Source of the DNA: Tubulanus polymorphus
Lineage: Eukaryota; Animalia; Nemertea
Assembly: GCF_964204645.1 (NCBI RefSeq)
Contig: NC_134031.1
Span: forward strand, 4,650,001 to 4,714,000
DNA: 64,000 bases
Direction: 5' to 3'
Shown here: positions 33,882 to 63,419 of the stretch, in pieces
Numbering within the stretch: the first letter of the stretch is position 1
How the letters are laid out: every line of letters starts with the position of its first letter
The notes under the pieces: generated by a model
What the model was told of the DNA's origin: nothing
Seen by the model: the letters and a program-made list of their open reading frames with translations, nothing else
Database searches by the model: none
Made by a program: the position numbers and the translations under genes

Positions 33882-36800
33882 ATGTCGAGCGAAGAGAGTG
33901 GCGCTATCAACAAAGAAATAAAGCAATATCTGAAACTGTTCTGCATAACCGATAACGAGAACGACCTGTTAGAAATTGTTCAACGGATCGAATCGATCGC
34001 GGTGATTCATGATTTCGCGGATGACAAAATATTGACGAGCGAATTTTTTCGTAAGGCGACGTCAGTTTTTCGTTCACCTTACGCGCGAGAACTCGTCACA
34101 GCGCTGATAGCGGCGCTGAACGGATTCACCGCTAGAGATCGCGTGAGGGAACGGGTTCTGAAAGGAGGAATTCATCGCGACGTTTTAAAAACCCTTCGAT
34201 CGGTCGTCGGCTCGAAACATCCGTTAGACCGCGTACTAGCCGACCAAGCGTCGTTATTCATGCGCAATCTTTCGAAAGTTCCAATGGCGTTAAGATTTCA
34301 TTTCATCGATGATAACGTCGTCGGGGTTTATACGAAATTGCTCGACTGCTGGGACTCGCAGATATTCCAGCCGTCGGAAAGCGCGATGAACCGTCTCGGC
34401 GAATTGGCGCTCGGAAAATCGCTGATCGCAATCGTCGCCGCCGACGAAGAGAAACATTTCGTGCGAAGATTAAAAGCGCTGCGCGACGTGTTGGAAATTC
34501 CGTGTTTCATGCGCGCGAAAAGTCTCGAGCTCTACGATACGACGTCGCCGGACAAGGACGTCAACATCAGAGTCGAAATGATGAAACTCGCCGATATTTG
34601 GAGCGAAGTAAAACTCGATGCGGATAATTTGAATGAGGACCGAACCGTCGCCGTCGTTGAAGAAAAGAAATACGTCGATGTCGAAGTCACTTTTGTCGGT
34701 GAGTTTTTCGTTCATTGAAGAATTGCCAAAGTCTTCATGTTTTCATGCTAGGAACCATGATTTTAGAAGTTTTGAAAATAATCCATAATGAATGGCATGA
34801 AAACGTATTTCTAAAATTGATTGAGTTTATGAAATGGAGTTTCTGTGCTCTGGTTCAAATGAGTTGAAGAAGACTTCTTTAGCAATCCTTCAATACAGTG
34901 CAAAATGGATAGAAAATCAATGGCTTATTCAGACTACAGTTTCACTGGTTGTATAAAGACCAATATTGGAGATATTCATTAGATTAAGCAAAATATCCCC
35001 AAAAAATCAATCCCAGAGAAAAAAATTGGCTTAAGTCATTTATTCGTAAGGTAATGCATTCCTCCTTTTCACAGTTGATGGATGTTCGTTTTGGGCTCAG
35101 CTTTCGAAAACGAGCATCGACAAAGTCAAAGAAATTCGGCAGAAAATAACTTCATTCTCGCCGGAGGAACGGAAGTATTTGCAGATGCCGCCGCCAAACG
35201 GCTGTTTTGTTTGTCTGTCACATGACTCTAATCCGATCAATGGGTGAATTATGATTTCAGTATATTTTCAATATTTTAACGTATTTTTTCTCCTATGCGC
35301 GACAGATAAGAATTTGCATCTTTATATCTTATTTTTTCGCAGGTACGCTCGCGGTATTGTATTAACCAGTACTGAAAACAGTACAACAGTTTTTACTTTG
35401 GATTATGGTGTCAAAGTCACTGTTCCGTGGAGTCAATTATTTTATATATCTCCGAAAATGGGATTGAAAGGTTTAGGACCCCAGGCAGTTTTCTGTCGAT
35501 TAAACGGTGAGTTTTCAAAAGCATATATCAGGGTTCATTCGTAGCGAATCAATGTGCTTTTAAGTGCTTAGTTTTGAAGGGCCCTCACCTTTCACAACAA
35601 TTTCAAAAAGTGTTCAAATACAAAGTGCTTACTTTGGACTTTTTGTATCCCAAATTATTTTTTTAGGAAAATTATGCATTATGCCAATATTAATGCCTGC
35701 ATAAAAAAATATAAAGAAATACATAGGACGAAGCTGTGCAGTCTTTTATGCGTAATAAAAAAAGTAACACTTTTGCCTTACGAAAGTGCTTAAAAAGTGC
35801 TTTCTAATACTGTCGAAGAGTGCGGAAAAGCGCTTACTTTTGTCTCAGCCGCATGTACTAAGCACCCTGTATGTACTGTTAACTCTACCTAGCAAGTCCG
35901 GTTGGATTCTACTAGTTCGCCAACAAACCCTAATCAAATTTGATGATAATGATAAGTAAGTTACGTGATGACACCTTTCTCCAATAGGTACATGTCCTGC
36001 GACGAGTCACAGAGCAGTTTTAAACAACATTTTGGGAACTTTCTATAACTTGTCGATTGACTCTATCTCTATTTGTAAGTAGAAATGGAATTTGAAGGTA
36101 TCAGTATATATTTTGACCGAATTGTTCCGAATTGTATGGACCATAGATCTCGGCCAATAAGCCAGGGACGGATCTTCTGCGAGACTCTCCTAGGTCCGGT
36201 CAAATTTTTGCCCCATTTATTTTAAGGCAATTTGATAAAAAAAGTACATTTCCTTGACACCAATTAAGAAAAGTACCATTTATGACAATTTTGTCAAAAA
36301 TTCTAGAAATGGATAAAAGTGATGCTGCCAGAATGCCATTTCTTAATAATTTGCCCTAACATATTTGGTAAGACCCTCAGACCACCAGATTTTTTCTCTA
36401 AAATATCATGGTGAACGTTTCACAATCTCACTCTGCTCTCTACTCTACTCTTTCTAGGTAGGTGTCTGTTTGATACTTCAGCGATGGATCGACTGTTGCA
36501 ACTTTCCGTATGTACCGATGCTGATGTATCCATGCACGCGTCGAACGTCATCGGTAGTATAGCCGCTCAGTCATCCCTTCGTGAAAAAGTTGCGCAGAAA
36601 GGTGCTTTGAAACTAATGCTCGGTAGGTATAGTGCCACAGACCCCCACTTGCGTCGACCAAACGCTGATAGTAAAGGGTTCGATACAATGCATACGATAA
36701 AGGACTCAGATACCTTTAGTTAAGTTTGCGCTCGGTAAAATTTGACTTGTGAAAATGTAACATCAGATACTACAGTCGGCCTCATTAGCAGTTTTTAGAA

Positions 36801-39800
36801 CTTGACTGATACTATGTTCAGGTATAAAATGTACGGCAACAAGCAGCTCATTAGACTGAGCTTTGAGAAAGGAGGACAAAAGACTGATAATAAACTAAAC
36901 CCGCAGTGACGATTTTACAATTTATATTCCGACAGTTTTGAAGTTTTGACATAGTCTTAGTAATGGTATACGGTACATTAGTTACATATATATTGGTATA
37001 AACTGTCTTATCTGTGTCTTAGCGATCGTCTCTTAGTTCTTGTCCCTATCCTTCTTTAGCAACATCTATATTTTTAAACTACTATATACCTGAATTATGT
37101 TATTTACGTTTCTCTGAAAATGAAGTTAAGCCAAAATTTCGAAACTGTCAGAAAATAGATTGTTAAATCATCAACTGTGGGTTTTGTTTTTAGCACTGAA
37201 ATACTGGGATCGATATCAGTCAGTCTCCCAGTAAAAAAAAAGACAGTGATATGAATCTTCTTACTAATGTTTAGTGGTAATCATATTTACAGACTTGTCA
37301 GTAACAGCAGCTACAGAACCATTCAACGACGATAAAGCCCGCATTTTAAGTGCTTCACTCGGCGCTATCGTCAATATTTTGTACAACTGTTTGGACAATA
37401 AGAACATGTTCCTCGGGTTGGATGGTAAATATTTTTTTCTTCGAAAACCGGAACCCAGTTCCGTAGTTGTGAGTAAGGTTTGAAATTATGTAGCTGATAG
37501 TTTTATTGCAATGAAAGGGTGGCCACTGACCTGGAAAGTTCAGGGAATCTGAAATCTCAGGTAAAACTCGGGGAATACGGATATGTTATTGACCACACGT
37601 TTCTTTATCACTGCATGATTCATAAAAAAATGAATAAATTGTAACATTTTAAATCAAGAAATTTCTCAGATTTTCTGTTATTACATGGAAAAGTCAGGGA
37701 AAATTTTGTAAATTTGTAAATTGGCAGAAAGTGGCCACCCTGAATGGTTAAAACTCTCAAGCTCTCAGTCAAAACTGCGGAACTGGGTCCTTGTTATGTA
37801 TACTGAATACCATTAAGTCGATGAACCTTTCTTTCATTGCCTTACCGACTTGCTCTGTCCCTAGGCTTGGAAACAGTAAGATACATTTATAAGAATGTAA
37901 CCCATACAGAATGTCGTGGTCGAATTAGTCAATTAATCAACGTATTGAAAGCCCAAAATAAAGCGACGAGATGTCAAGTCGCAAAAAATAAGCCGACATC
38001 AACAAAATCCGAGTAAGTGCAGCTGGTAGATATATATCTCTGTTGATAGTTAGACGGCCGTCATATTTTGTTTTCTGTTGCTTTCATCGTGACCGTTCAT
38101 GGTTTGCAGCGGTGATGTGGATTACTTTGCGCGTCCGAGACGGAAATCTGTTGAATTATCCCAGCACGCGATTCGTAAAGTTACAATGGTAGCTTTGAAT
38201 AAAGAAAGGCTGAAAGATGTAAGTTCATCAGAAACCTGTGTTTATATACTATAACATGGTCCCTGCAACTCCTCAATTCCTTTTGAAAACTTTTAAACAG
38301 AACAGGCTTTTTAAATTGAAATTCCTATGATTTCAGCAAAATGCCTTAGACTCCTTTGAAACGCAATTAAAATTTTTTTAGTACACAACCCATAACTCTA
38401 TATTTCTATATTCCTATATTTGGAACCAGAATATTCTAGTTATCCAATTCTATGCTTATTGAATTAGAAATCAAGTTTATAATTATAAAAGATCAAAATT
38501 TCCTTACAAGACCACCAAATTAACAGCTTGCGGAGATAAACAGTACCGACTTTAAGAGAAGTCTTCTGTAATTGGGATATGAAAGTGATGGAGACATTTC
38601 CTTGAAATTTGAAAGTTTCTCCTATTTAACTTCTTGAAAACTCCTTAGATATTCCAGAATGGCTGATCTGTTGAGCCCCTGCTATAAATGAGTGATTTAA
38701 GGAGGGTTAATCTCTTGACCTCATTCAACATTGATCATTGATTATCAATCTGTTTGTGCAGGATTCGAGCGATGAAGAAGTGAATGAGCCGCTGTTGATG
38801 AAAAACCGGTCGAATGACTCACAAACCGATGTGGTTCCCGTGAATGCTGCCTATATGAATGTAGACTGCTCCTACTACGTACAAGGTATTCTTTCCCTCA
38901 TTTCTAGCAACTGATTATCAATAGATGTTTGTTCAGTCTTGTGGATATCAGTAAATATACACTGCCTCACTAACATTGATTTGACTACTCATTGATACAA
39001 AAAAGAAACTTATATCGCATGGATCAAGATTCGGAATAATTTGCTGATGATGTGTGTATGTTTACATATTGGAAACTAAGGAAATCGTTTATGATTTTAT
39101 AGGTTTGCTGGTCAATTTCAAACATGATGAGAAAAATGAGATTATTACGACTACGCAATTGCATCAAATATCTTCCGACGTTCTGGAGAAAATTGTCTGC
39201 GGTTTCTTGAATAGCGGTGAGTGTTCTGGTATTCTGCACTAAAGAAGCGTTGGGGTCCTACAGAGGTTGGCATCTGTGGCATATGTCCCCTTATTGTATG
39301 CCCGATATAAGTCGTAACTGGCAATAACAGAAATCTTAGTAATGGAAACATGTTTTAACTATAGTAAGTACATAAACAGGGTAGCCACTTACCTGGAAAT
39401 CAGGGAGAAGTCAGGAAAATGTTCTTCTCTTCAGAACAGTCAAGGAATATTAAGGGAATTTTGTAAAAAGCTTAAAGTCAGGGATAAGTCAAGGAAATAT
39501 GTTAAAATCACTGTATCGCACGTAAACAATGTGTTACAAAATATATTTTACATATTGGACTGTGTTAATTGATTGGGTTCTTAGCAGATCGAGTCAGGAT
39601 AAACAATGATAAACAGCATGTCATAGAATAGACAGGTAAAAAACAGGATTGATATCCCACCCCCATTGAAACCTCAAACTACCCTCACTGTTACCCTCTT
39701 CAAAAATTCCTGCGCCGCGTCATAAGAATGAAAGACTAATGATTTTTGTATTTTTCTGCAGGTATCACCGGTAGTATTTATTTCGGAATAGCCAAGGAGC

Positions 39801-41406
39801 TACGGGTGATCGGTATACGCATCACGAGACCGGAACGAGATGAATTTCGTCTGGCGGTCGATCGATTCATGGGTCGCCTGAAACCGATCATAAATCCCAC
39901 AGCGTACGAGGTCACCTATTCGCCGGTGGTCTACAAACAGAATCACGATTCTCCCGAATCCAGGATTCATCTGAACGATCTACACGTGATTGGTATGTGT
40001 TAGAATTTTGTTCAGAATATTAGTCCTTTTTGATTACCGGTGCCTGTCTATAGGACACTCGGTTTTTAATTGTCGCATATTTTTCTTACATTTTGGAAAT
40101 GATCAGTTTTCAACCCGGCCTAGAGGTCAACAAGAGTACCAACTAGACTGCAGGGGTCAGATTCATGTGAAAAATGTGAAGAATTGTGAAGCATAAATGT
40201 CTGCTTCAAAAATCGTGGAAAAAAAACGGAAGAATTCGACAAATTCATGAAAAATAGGATCGTGATCAGTAACCGCTTATGTTGTTATTGTACCTTGATA
40301 TGAGAAAATCTGAACCTGTAAAAGAATTTGAAAAATTCTGGTGTTGCGAAAATTCCAGAGTTCATCAATCTGATCGCTGAGATTCTGATCCAATTTCGTT
40401 GTGTTTCTTGCTTGTGCTGGGATCTTATCCGTAAAGACTAACTAATTATTTACACGTTACGATTGAGCTTTATTTGCGATACGTCCCATGACAATGGCGT
40501 CATTCTCCCATCTCTAAATCATGTGACATATTTTGATTGATTCATACAAAACATTCCTCTTTTCCTCTTTCAAGATTTTGAATTTAATTGATCGAGAGCA
40601 ATCTATGTTACTCCCTGCATTCCTCGGCAATTGGAACTATGAGATACAATCCCTTGAAACTGTACCATATTTTCATGGAGATTAATACCAGGATCGTTGC
40701 CCGCATTCTACAGCATGTTGTGTTTCTTGCTCGTCCAGGGGCCAGTTGCATAGTCATGGCTTAGACTTAAGACCAGTCTAAGACCAACTTAGTTCTATAG
40801 CCAATCTAACAACCTGAGACCAGTCTGAAGATTTAAGACCACTTTTGGACTTAAGTCACGACTGTGCAACTGGCCCCTGGGGTCTTATCCTTAAGCTTCG
40901 GCAGTAGATAAAGACTGACCAATAGATATGCACGGTGTTACGACCAAGTTTTATTTGTGTTATGTCCAATGGCATTCTAAAAATCACATGACATAATTTG
41001 AATGATACCGGGTACGCGTAGTATATAAACGATGTGTGTTGAATGTTGCAGAGATTAAAATAAAGAGGTGCTATGACGCACTATACTGCTGTCACGATGG
41101 AAAGAACTATTCCAGAACGAAAAGTGCCGAAACTATAGAATGCAGCGCTCAGGTTTGTGCATAGTACATCAAATAACGGTGTCTCCAGCAGTTGAAATTG
41201 GTTCAATAACCATAGATTCACTTAGAACTCACAAATTTGTTTTTTTTTTTTAGGCCGTGCGTGAACGAGCATTAGCGATTGCAGAAGACAAGTGGGGTGC
41301 TGAAGTGGTTCAGCTGCGGCAAGAAATTGCCGCATTAAAAACGATGATTGAAGATTGTCGAAAAGATTCAAAACCGAAGAAATTCGTGCCAAATAAGATT
41401 ACGTAG
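33882..41406 (+). CDS. ARM-repeat / Tudor / Schlafen(AlbA_2, SLFNL1-like) fusion protein, 837 aa. 13 exons: 33882-34698, 35075-35243, 35343-35506, 35988-36074, 36458-36622, 37293-37424, 37865-38012, 38110-38218, 38762-38885, 39103-39216, 39762-39992, 41052-41152, 41254-41406
   Basis: All introns GT-AG, phases consistent (1,2,1,1,1,1,2,0,1,1,1,0), total 2514 nt ending ACG TAG. Tudor: VEVTFVVDGCSFWAQL...GYARGIV...VFTLDYG...PQAVFCRLNG. ARM: ASNVIGSIAAQSSLREKVAQKGALKLML and SLGAIVNILYNCLDNKNMFLGLDGL. AlbA_2: VCGFLNSGITGSIYFGI...VIGI...RLAVDRFMGRLKPII. Confidence 0.9.
34666..35506 (+). other. Extended-Tudor domain coding region (end of exon 1 to exon 3)
   Basis: N-terminal strands YVDVEVTFVVDGCSFWAQL, helix, barrel with YARG and DYG motifs, closing PQAVFCRLNG motif. 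Confidence 0.85.
35529..35869. mobile_element. Degenerate hAT-like MITE
   Basis: CAGGGT...ACCCTG termini with several internal AAGTGCTT subterminal repeats; no clear TSD. Confidence 0.6.
36897..37185. mobile_element. Inverted-repeat element with degenerate Penelope-type hammerhead motif
   Basis: Arm 36897-36950 is an inverted copy of ~37130-37185; + strand tct-CTGAAAA-T-GAAGTT...AATTTC-GAAAC-TGTC-aga. Confidence 0.55.
37515..37742. mobile_element. hAT-like MITE family E
   Basis: AGGGTGGCCACT...AGTGGCCACCCTG TIRs with TCAGGGAA subterminal repeats; related copies at 39377 (partial) and 48482-48735 (inverted). Confidence 0.8.
38870..41300 (+). other. Schlafen/AlbA_2 domain coding region (exons 9-13)
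   Basis: YYVQGLLVNFKHDEKNEII / EKIVCGFLNSG-ITGSIYFGIAKELRVIGI / RDEFRLAVDRFMGRLKPIINPTAYEVTYSPV / HVIEIKIK / LYCCHDGKNYSRT follow the AlbA_2 motif order as recalled for SLFNL1. Confidence 0.85.
40739..40876. mobile_element. Harbinger-like MITE family A, best-preserved copy (138 bp)
   Basis: TIRs GGGCCAGTTGCA / TGCAACTGGCCC, flanks CAG and CTG; an empty paralogous site exists near 40415. Confidence 0.92.
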
Positions 41407-61692: not shown

Positions 61693-63132
61693 ATGTATTA
61701 TTTGCTATTGGCGTTGCTCGCGTTTTCGGCGGCGTCCGTGCCGAACGTCGCCGCCTACACGCACGAATTCAAGGACTACCGCGAATTTCTCAACGATCCC
61801 GAATTCAATTTCATCATGTGCCCGATGAAATGCTTTTGCGACGACGAAAAGGTCTACTGTCGCAACGCGAACTACACGCGTATCCCGCAGGAATTCAGCA
61901 AAGCGATCTCCGAACTGGCTCTGGACGGGAACCGACTACAGACCCTGACGCGCAACAGTCTGGACAGGTACCGGTACCTACGCACGCTGAATCTATACGA
62001 TAACCATCTAGATTACATCGAGCCGGGCACGTTTACGAATTTGAAATATCTGCGATACCTGAATCTAGGGCGTAATCGTTTGGAATACCTGGCTAGCAGT
62101 ATGTTTGACGGGCTGCACAAGCTGCGCACGATCAACCTTCAAGCGAACGGCCTACGCGTCGTTCCCGACGTCGTCAAATCGTTCGCGCGTCTCAACGATC
62201 TGAATCTCGGCGAAAACCGCATCGTCGAATTGCCGAAGGACACTTTCGTCAAAAATCCGAAAATCCGTCTGCTCAACGTGAGTCACAACGCGATCGCGAC
62301 GATGCACCGAGAAGTTCTGAAACCGCTGACGCATTTACGGTACTTTCTCATCAACGATAATCCGTTGGGCGACGCCGGCAGCGAGTTGGACTTGACCGCG
62401 AATCGGCGTCTGTACTTCATCGACATGTCCGATACGATGCTCCGCGCCGTCCCGAAGAATCTGCCGGCGACGCTGTTCGACTTGCGTCTGCCGCGCAATC
62501 TCATCGATTGGATCTACGTCGAAGACTTCAAAAACACGACCGCGTTGGACATTTTGATCTTGAACAACAACGCGATAACACACATCGACGACGCGGCGCT
62601 GGTCAACTCGACGAATCTACGCGAATTGTGGCTGAATCACAATAAACTACAGCGCATGCCGTCATTACCGTCTAGTCTGCGCTCGCTTTACGCCGACTTC
62701 AACGAAATCTACGAAATCCAACGCAAGACGTTCGCGTCGTGTCCGCGTTTGGAGTTCCTATCGATGCAAAAGAACAAGATTCGCGACATCGAAGCAGAGA
62801 GCTTCAAGAACTTGTCGCTGCGATCGGTCGACTTGAGCGCGAATCGAATTCTCGAGTTGAAAACGTTCACGTTCTGCGACCTGAAGAACCTCGAGAAACT
62901 CGACTTGTCGGTGAACCCGCTCGTCAAACTGGACGCGCAGAGCATGCACAACGTCGACAATCTACGCGTGCTTCAAATGGCGCGAACAAACGAGAAATCT
63001 CGACGCGAATTCGACGATGGCGGCTCCGATTTGGACATGTTGGAACGCATGGCCCATCTGACACACCTCGACTTGTTTAACAGTTCCGGAATCGCCAAAA
63101 AATGGATCGCCTCGAGAAAAGTTCTCCGAAAG
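61693..63132 (+). CDS. Extracellular leucine-rich-repeat protein, first coding exon (480 codons; gene probably continues past the window)
   Basis: Signal peptide MYYLLLALLAFSAASVPNVAA; LRRNT cap CPMKCFCDDEKVYCRNANYTRIP; ~15 LxxLxLxxNxL repeats; no LRRCT before the ORF stop; donor AAG|gtaacg at 63132. Confidence 0.93.
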
Positions 63133-63167
63133 GTAACGACACGAGAAATTTCCATCGATCGATTTTA

Positions 63168-63419
63168 GCCCCAATCACAGGGAGGTACCAACCGAAGCCT
63201 GTTTGACCAGGGCCATATTGGCCGGACCAAAAACGTCAGACCAGGCCCAGTCATGGGTCAAATTATAGCATGTGTATTGTAACTGGTTCCCAAAGTGATG
63301 CACTTTGCACTTAGTGGTTTACATGTGAACGTACTCTCTCATTAGTAGGCACGGACAGAATTCGACCTGGTCCCAATCCGTGCTAATTTGGCCCGGGGCA
63401 AATCATCTGTGATCGCGGC
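63168..63419. mobile_element. MITE family F with TTA target-site duplication
   Basis: TTA-GCCCCAATCACAG ... CTGTGATCGCGGC-TTA; a 3-bp TWA TSD is typical of PIF/Harbinger. Confidence 0.85.

Follow-up and report, generated by a model that had tools for sequence, protein, structure and literature searches.

We examined a stretch of 64,000 nucleotides (nt) from the nemertean Tubulanus polymorphus (NC_134031.1, positions 4650001-4714000; hereafter the window, in whose own numbering coordinates are given), which contains the gene LOC141907998. On the + strand, 13 exons with canonical GT..AG borders and a preserved reading phase lead from an ATG at 33882 to a TAG at 41404-41406 and sum to 2514 nt, that is, 837 codons and a stop. 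Exon-by-exon comparison found all 13 translations, in order, within the RefSeq protein XP_074653860.1 (837 amino acids (aa); here P0003), titled "uncharacterized protein LOC141907998 isoform X1". This confirmed that LOC141907998 is a real gene and that the 837-aa, 13-exon open reading frame (ORF) put forward in an original prediction for this DNA is exact. The gene is single-copy, a six-frame search of its own genome matching its 13 exons only. Exhaustive HMMER searching with exon 1 alone as query retrieved a 758-aa record (P0001), whose 90% cluster holds three RefSeq isoforms: X1 (P0003, 837 aa), X2 (P0001, 758 aa) and X3 (P0004, 690 aa). Whole-protein analyses were run on the database records P0001 and P0003. 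Already known are the RefSeq model, described as uncharacterized, and both of its Pfam domains, which are precomputed; new here are the recognition of a family and the likely pseudo-enzyme nature of its Schlafen-like domain.

Splicing was followed in contigs from four of the five public runs carrying the locus, compared with positions 35407-41406. Run X2, from a 2024 study, showed GT..AG joints at all ten introns from exon 3/exon 4 to exon 12/exon 13, and run X5, from a separate study of 2014, showed nine of these ten, the exon 4/exon 5 joint not being among those listed. One 1717-nt contig of run X2 carries the joints from exon 3/exon 4 through exon 9/exon 10 and so leads from the Tudor exon, exon 3, to the first exon of the Schlafen-type AlbA_2 domain, exon 10; seven joints of this run share a single contig depth of 113.6. 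Exons 5-7 lie at positions 348-792 of the contig record and positions 1-347 correspond exactly to exons 8, 9 and 10; by arithmetic, the same contig would also extend about 500 nt into exon 1. A 978-nt contig of run X5 joins 45 nt of exon 8 to exons 9, 10, 11, 12 and 13 and continues for 210 nt past the stop into the 3' untranslated region. Runs X3 and X4 cover the introns, carry no joints and look like DNA. LOC141907998 is therefore transcribed and spliced as one mRNA. The splicing from exon 1 to exon 13 that had been predicted is borne out by contigs for exons 3-13; for the exon 1/exon 2 and exon 2/exon 3 junctions the evidence comes from the RefSeq model, from phase and from a homologue, P0002, in which the equivalent region is an uninterrupted ORF. 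It is extremely improbable that the gene predictor merged a Tudor/ARM (armadillo) gene with a neighbouring Schlafen-like gene: the long disordered linker between the halves, and nothing more, speaks for such an artefact, whereas single cDNA contigs span this linker in two independent studies, which defeats a two-gene explanation, and intronless transcripts found elsewhere hold both halves in one ORF.

Pfam located a TUDOR domain at residues 261-384 of P0003 (E = 4e-10, 40.2 bits against a cut-off of 23, profile positions 3-121 of 121) and an SLFN_AlbA_2 domain (PF04326) at residues 660-777 (E = 1.8e-8, 35.3 bits against a cut-off of 25.3); the C-terminal piece alone gave E = 2.2e-9 and 38.3 bits for the latter. 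Taken exon by exon, Pfam returned weak Tudor and AlbA_2 matches only (exon 3 by itself, TUDOR, E = 3.4e-4; exon 11 by itself, SLFN_AlbA_2, E = 1.9e-3), and the helical exons, each scanned alone, gave no Pfam match. The AlphaFold model of the whole of P0003 has a mean predicted local distance difference test score (pLDDT) of 50.9, with confident helical blocks at residues 11-130 (pLDDT 76-88) and 420-545 (pLDDT 78-92). Residues 1-200 (helices 3-201) and 391-553 are all-helical in this model, and residues 554-654, an acidic linker of about 100 residues, are disordered. Foldseek with the whole-protein model returned armadillo proteins for all 50 listed matches (E = 1.8e-7 to 3.5e-5, probability 1.00), including designed ARM proteins, beta-catenin, importin-alpha, plakophilin and Vac8. 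These alignments, of about 530-620 columns, bridge the Tudor insert and both helical blocks, so that the Tudor domain is an insert in, or between, armadillo repeats. The Pfam family ARM_ARMC5 stayed under its cut-off (E = 0.024 in the Tubulanus protein). Together, Pfam, AlphaFold and Foldseek bore out the predicted order of ARM, Tudor, ARM, linker, single AlbA_2 domain and coiled coil.

Exon 1 (33882..34698; residues 1-272 plus 1 nt) contributes the start codon, the ARM-like repeats of residues ~1-200, a low-confidence spacer and the first Tudor strands from residue ~261; it is an open frame identical to P0003 1-272 and ends at a GTGAGT donor. The Tudor domain continues with its N-terminal extension (strand, helix) and the start of its core in exon 2 (35075..35243; residues 274-328; phase 1 acceptor and donor), and with the core, including the conserved D-Y-G, in exon 3 (35343..35506; residues 330-383; joint 35505/35987 in runs X2 and X5). 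A second ARM-like block begins in exon 4 (35988..36074; residues 385-412; joints on both sides in run X2), runs through exon 5 (36458..36622; residues 414-467; pLDDT 81-92) and exon 6 (37293..37424; residues 469-511; joints in runs X2 and X5) and finishes in exon 7 (37865..38012; residues 513-560), where the disordered linker starts. The linker fills exon 8 (38110..38218; residues 562-597; pLDDT <30) and the acidic, Ser-rich exon 9 (38762..38885; residues 598-638). Exon 10 (39103..39216; residues 640-676) encodes the N-terminal part of the AlbA_2 domain up to its C-G-F-L-N-S motif and is the branch point of alternative splicing, with joints 38883/39101, 39215/39761 and 39215/39587. The AlbA_2 core (G-x-x-Y-x-G strand, helix, strands) lies in exon 11 (39762..39992; residues 678-753) and the final AlbA_2 strands in exon 12 (41052..41152; residues 755-787; joints 39991/41051 and 41150/41252 in runs X2 and X5). 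Exon 13 (41254..41406; residues 788-837 and the stop) holds a long helix, predicted to form a parallel, in-register dimeric coiled coil, and a basic tail. Exons 5, 7, 8, 9 and 11 are each present in spliced contigs.

With a single AlbA_2 match, P0003 is without the two-lobed core of the Schlafen family proper (SLFN1-14), and solved Schlafens align to its AlbA_2 domain via their second lobe only (chain residues ~192-319). AlphaFold modelled residues 630-837 (mean pLDDT 63.7) as a strand-helix-strand core with a 41-residue terminal helix (786-826). Foldseek with this model placed Schlafen or SAMD9 AlbA_2 chains at all of ranks 1-12, with weak E values of 0.05-0.4. For the same chains VIA-align gave Z of 4.3-5.0 over 93-143 residues at a root-mean-square deviation of 4-6.8 Å, scores that unrelated small alpha/beta folds also reach. 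The ESM Atlas model of residues 630-817 had a TM-score of 0.79 to an RRM+AlbA_2 cluster and of 0.63-0.71 to eight other AlbA_2 clusters. A phmmer search of the PDB with residues 598-837 gave chance matches only and a profile search was required; a profile of the family described below matched the SAMD9 AlbA_2 domain (E = 4.2e-4), rat Slfn13 (5yd0, second catalytic lobe, E = 1.2e-3), SLFN11 and SLFN12. Through Pfam together with Foldseek, VIA-align and ESM Atlas, the assignment of the C-terminal domain as AlbA_2, as first proposed, is secure.

A homodimer model of residues 630-837 scored an interface ipSAE of 0.33 in three runs against 0.00 for the best control, with a partner pLDDT of 80 and at least 91% of contacts shared among runs. 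The mark of 0.32 is reached by 21 of 30 solved homodimers and by none of 23 solved monomers; for eukaryotes the counts are 17 of 29 and 0 of 30. In the modelled interface the terminal helix (P0003 ~784-826) is paired parallel and in register, with contacts 179-179, 183-183 and 186-186 in the numbering of the 630-837 piece. Homodimerisation via the C-terminal helix is thus supported as a prediction. Read from the sequence, the C-terminus is a charged helix with a basic tail and no transmembrane helix.

The same architecture was found in three full-length transcripts from marine organisms and one partial contig, at 25-33% identity. The partial one, P0002 (416 aa), is a Logan contig of SRR8850654 with 33% identity over the ARM-Tudor region, and an unspliced intron interrupts it at a point matching the Tubulanus exon 3/exon 4 border. 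In the nucleotide record (L001:1357-2499) an ARM-like exon resumes at about 2117-2300, after the intron read-through. The position of this intron seems to be conserved between Tubulanus and the SRR8850654 species. Among the full-length members, P0005 (1264 aa, from an intronless 4-kb contig of the Joint Genome Institute) has both TUDOR and AlbA_2 above the Pfam cut-offs and collinear with those of P0003 (E = 4e-9 and 7e-9), and L013 is a 1161-aa ORF with Tudor and AlbA_2 domains, 49% identical to P0005. The third, L019, is a complete 833-aa ORF that gives one alignment to P0003 214-818 (26% identity, E = 1e-31), with Pfam matches to TUDOR (4.7e-9), AlbA_2 (2.8e-10) and ARM_ARMC5 (1.4e-7, below that family's 79.9-bit cut-off) and a C-terminal helix similar to the Tubulanus one. 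Pfam TUDOR scores were 36.8 bits for L019, 33 for P0002 and 26 for P0005, all above 23, and 18.1 for L013, below it. At least two subgroups can be told apart, one with a short linker and coiled coil, the other with a long linker and no coiled coil. The relatives' contigs look like eukaryotic metatranscriptome assemblies.

These relatives were few among the searches made. Among 1.84 billion representatives, the exhaustive HMMER search with exon 1 returned the protein itself and P0002 only, and word-indexed searches with whole P0001 and with P0003 598-837 returned self matches only; a third word-indexed search, with an alignment as query, retrieved P0005. A related-locus search of metagenomes with automatic patterns found nothing, and a hand-made degenerate C-G-F-L-N-S...G..Y.G pattern applied to metagenomes retrieved L013 and L019, the other 68 pattern loci being mostly bacterial or gut-metagenome contigs with short motif matches. 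An exact-sequence look-up of the L019 protein gave no record. A feature search of the ESM Atlas with the whole protein yielded no usable match, and no cluster of at least 50 members had the ARM-Tudor-AlbA_2 architecture. In the searchable literature we found no paper combining armadillo, Tudor and Schlafen domains, in agreement with the earlier statement that no characterised protein built in this way is known; as to the companion suggestion, that the architecture be sought across metazoan proteomes, the same domain order was found in other organisms. By sequence comparison, then, the ARM-Tudor-AlbA_2 proteins appear as a thinly sampled, uncharacterised family with conserved domain order.

In Caenorhabditis elegans, the Schlafen-fold nucleases of PUCH make the 5' ends of PIWI-interacting RNAs (piRNAs). 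Searched against the PDB, a profile of the family's Tudor domain matched TDRKH (E = 1.8e-6), TDRD1, Papi, TOFU-6 (E = 6e-4), Tudor, SND1 and Spindle-E. A canonical methyl-arginine extended Tudor domain of the TDRD1/SND1 type has four aromatic cage residues and an Asn after D-Y-G. When the family's domain is aligned with those of TDRD1 (4b9w) and TDRKH, the D-Y-G Tyr alone is retained. The W-Y-R-A motif becomes y-a-R-g, its Tyr being Ala, Cys, Ala, Ala or Phe in the family; the cage Phe or Tyr two residues ahead of the Asp is Leu, and Val, Phe, Met or Ile stands in place of the Asn that follows the Gly. This loss of cage residues makes canonical methyl-arginine reading unlikely. The aromatic cage of the TOFU-6 Tudor domain is also degenerate (PMC10567574). 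The N-terminal extension is present in the model (strands at 267-282, helix at 284-298). Past the Tudor core come a low-confidence stretch (364-391) and then confident ARM helices, and no C-terminal SN-like strands were seen in a model whose Tudor pLDDT is low. These observations weaken the earlier assignment of an extended Tudor domain, of which the N-terminal extension stands: as modelled, the domain appears not to be a full extended Tudor, and the SN-like surface that TOFU-6 uses for PUCH may be at least partly absent.

We next consider the catalytic residues of the Schlafen fold. The acidic triad of Slfn13 consists of E205, E210 and D248, in a numbering counted in the 5yd0 alignment. The D248 equivalent adjoins the invariant G-x-x-Y-x-G and is Lys in Tubulanus and Pro, Arg and Arg in the other three of four members. 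An Asp is kept at this position in Slfn13 (G-V-D-D), SAMD9 (G-V-K-D), SLFNL1-like exons of other animals (G-V-x-D-D) and an RRM-AlbA_2 gene of the same genome (G-V-L-D). The E210 equivalent is lost in all four members, and that of E205 is at most kept in Tubulanus and L019, in an uncertain part of the MAFFT alignment. The Pfam AlbA_2 match starts at profile position 19, 15, 20 and 5 in the family as against 1 in the RRM-AlbA_2 gene; with these late starts, the E-x4-E-x-K head is not recognised in the family. The AlbA_2 signature C-G-F-L-N-S ... G-x-x-Y-x-G is strongly conserved across it. As every one of the four members lacks the catalytic Asp and one or both catalytic Glu residues, the alignment points to a likely pseudo-nuclease.

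In the alternative closest to the original prediction, the protein would be a working endoribonuclease of the Schlafen type that its Tudor domain holds to substrates or partners, a PUCH/PETISCO-like processing unit within a single polypeptide. Its AlbA_2 fold is indeed nearest the nuclease lobe of Slfn13, SLFN11 and SAMD9, the predicted dimer could make a two-lobed, nuclease-like body, and the MAFFT alignment leaves room for one retained Glu in Tubulanus and L019. With Lys, Pro, Arg and Arg in place of D248, the second Glu lost in every member and the head of the Pfam profile unmatched, however, we regard this alternative as unlikely. Of the Tudor-tethered Schlafen complex that had been proposed, the fusion is real, while a Tudor-tethered nuclease is unlikely unless a catalytic partner joins, the Asp being lost and the Glu pair incomplete. 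The earlier interpretation was therefore a fair lead that is partly supported and was overstated on the enzyme side.

Such a partner may be encoded in the same genome. The only other AlbA_2 match there, at G000:C8:12457852-12458781 (L079:814-1743), is an open frame of 309 aa in which an RRM-like N-terminus precedes the head of an AlbA_2 domain; this domain keeps both E-x4-E-x-K and the Asp after G-x-x-Y-x-G. Taking an RRM-like N-terminus and a catalytically intact single AlbA_2 domain as the marks of the SLFNL1 type, this gene is likely of that type and is a candidate catalytic partner of the fusion protein; LOC141907998, with its ARM and Tudor N-terminus and lost catalytic residues, falls outside it. 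RRM+AlbA_2 proteins also exist as an ESM Atlas cluster. According to a preprint (bioRxiv 10.1101/2024.01.12.575368), the catalytic residues are retained in vertebrate SLFNL1, a protein described there as uncharacterised. Among the loci retrieved by the hand-made pattern, exon-like SLFNL1-type AlbA_2 cores with the catalytic Asp kept were seen in termite-gut contigs (L023, L025, L027, L050, L052, L053, L066 and L069) and also in L028, L062 and L071. The contigs are AT-rich and look like animal host DNA, and tblastn of them found no Tudor domain nearby.

Alternative splicing acts on the Schlafen half of LOC141907998. A 45-nt cassette exon (39588..39632, + strand) with an in-frame stop produces isoform X3 (690 aa), which is without the AlbA_2 core; its joints, 39215/39587 and 39632/39759, were seen in run X2 only, and the record P0004 has a different ending after exon 10. 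An alternative last exon, whose coding part (40107..40123, + strand) is based on the C-terminus of P0001, yields isoform X2 (758 aa), in which AlbA_2 is cut after exon 11; it is represented by joint 39991/40106 and a contig piece at 40106-40763, again in run X2 only. Isoforms X2 and X3 thus lose part or all of AlbA_2, and the Schlafen module is optional; contig depths are unable to rank the three isoforms.

A further candidate exon spotted by eye at 40577-40680 was rejected, since it runs into a stop, lacks any supported joint and is absent from every isoform. Within intron 11, positions 40735-40880 form a 146-nt element resembling a miniature inverted-repeat transposable element, whose terminal inverted repeats measure 29 nt and show 90% complementarity. 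In each of the four runs, contig depth over 40607-41006 exceeds that of the adjoining bins by factors ranging from hundreds to tens of thousands, and loose ends are numerous, which marks the intron 11 element as a very high-copy genomic repeat. In intron 6, one run X2 contig shows a non-canonical joint (37546-37723; AT..TT, skipping 176 nt) whose shorter side is 20 letters, probably a repeat or assembly artefact. Elsewhere in the window, 61693-63168 (+ strand) is a single-exon 491-aa ORF of leucine-rich repeats (LRR_8, E = 1.6e-51). On the minus strand over LOC141907998, the ORF list contains short ORFs only, with no annotated-looking feature.

Set beside known systems, LOC141907998 resembles TDRKH/Papi, TDRD1 and TOFU-6 in having a PF00567-type Tudor domain with an N-terminal strand-helix extension within a large multi-module scaffold. 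It differs from the TDRD proteins in that the Tudor domain is inserted in an armadillo solenoid whose helices follow at once, in being without a KH, LOTUS, MYND, helicase or RRM partner domain, and in its Schlafen-fold domain, which we found in no characterised TDRD protein. With PUCH it shares, by description and not by sequence, a single-Schlafen-domain protein coupled physically to a Tudor domain. SLFL-3/4 carry a transmembrane helix; in LOC141907998 the coupling is covalent, such a helix is absent and the catalytic residues are missing. PUCH is itself a multimer of Schlafen folds that includes non-catalytic subunits, with the catalytic Glu in TOFU-2 only, and it docks on PETISCO through a TOFU-1 helix that binds the SN-like surface of TOFU-6 (PMC10567574). 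This account agrees with what the original prediction had said of PUCH and of the TOFU-6 extended Tudor domain. SLFNL1-type proteins have the same AlbA_2 subtype signature (G-F-L-N-S, G-G-x-x-Y-x-G-V) and a single Schlafen lobe but, unlike LOC141907998, keep the E-x4-E-x-K head and the Asp, and carry an RRM-like N-terminus in place of ARM-Tudor-ARM. The AlbA_2 domain of SAMD9 and the C-lobe of the nuclease core of SLFN5/11/12/13/14 have the same fold as that of LOC141907998, which differs in having one lobe, no helicase or GTPase-like extension and a replaced catalytic Asp.

The likeness to SAMD9 raises the question whether the protein is a sensor or effector of innate immunity, like SAMD9 and the Schlafens; the repeats would then sense a trigger and AlbA_2 would bind or attack nucleic acid. 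The SAMD9 AlbA_2 domain is among the best PDB matches by both sequence and structure, and defence proteins of eukaryotes and bacteria commonly contain AlbA_2 domains. The gene, however, is single-copy with no paralogue and its architecture is kept across very divergent species; the protein has no NTPase or other signalling module and has lost the catalytic residues, and its Tudor domain is closest to germline TDRD-type domains. We therefore consider an immune role rather doubtful. Somewhat less probable again is a structural or trafficking armadillo protein, for example of sperm or cilia, in which the Tudor and AlbA_2 domains would be protein-binding knobs without RNA function. Armadillo repeats do account for roughly half of the protein's ordered part, the cage of the Tudor domain is degenerate, as is the nuclease site, and mouse Slfnl1, although enriched in testis, is not required for fertility (PMC7401030); the nucleic-acid-binding core fold and its C-G-F-L-N-S ... 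G-x-x-Y-x-G signature, by contrast, are strongly conserved in the family.

The explanation we favour, and to which we give about an even chance, is that LOC141907998 is a dimeric, non-catalytic scaffold or RNA-binding subunit. In this model, the armadillo surface and the cage-less Tudor domain would hold protein partners, and the coiled coil would pair the AlbA_2 pseudo-nuclease domains. The paired domains could then bind RNA themselves or pair with a catalytically competent Schlafen-fold protein, for which the RRM-AlbA_2 (SLFNL1-like) gene of the same genome would be the obvious candidate. PUCH, with TOFU-2 as its sole catalytic subunit and a Tudor protein holding the complex, would offer a parallel, and splicing would make the Schlafen module optional. 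For a protein that combines a TDRD-like Tudor domain with a Schlafen fold, germline RNA granules or small-RNA (piRNA) biogenesis would, by analogy, be the most natural setting, and a role there is plausible.

Several points weigh against this explanation. The alignment of the N-terminal Glu motif is uncertain, so one Glu may persist in Tubulanus and L019, and a single acidic residue together with residues of a partner could still form an active site. The dimer score barely reaches its mark (0.33 against 0.32), and the coiled coil is absent in the P0005/L013 subgroup, so that dimerisation through it is not family-wide. The structure models are of low-to-middling confidence, and the alignments from which they were built comprise 5-9 sequences only. 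The pathway, finally, is a guess, the runs with spliced contigs carrying no tissue label.

A bolder version of the scaffold explanation, in the manner of a Rosetta stone, would see Tudor scaffolds and single-lobe Schlafens as parts of an ancient machine for RNA 5'-end or precursor processing outside nematodes, the fusion being its docking pseudo-nuclease and the RRM-AlbA_2 protein its blade. We hold this to be unlikely; if true, a function could be predicted for vertebrate SLFNL1, and PUCH would have a counterpart outside nematodes. More generally, a TDRD-like Tudor domain and an SLFNL1-type fold are here covalently joined, conserved in distant marine animals and spliced so that the Schlafen part is optional. 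The family thereby offers a concrete, testable handle on whether Schlafen-like proteins take part in small-RNA and germ-granule biology beyond C. elegans, and on the role of the ancient orphan SLFNL1.

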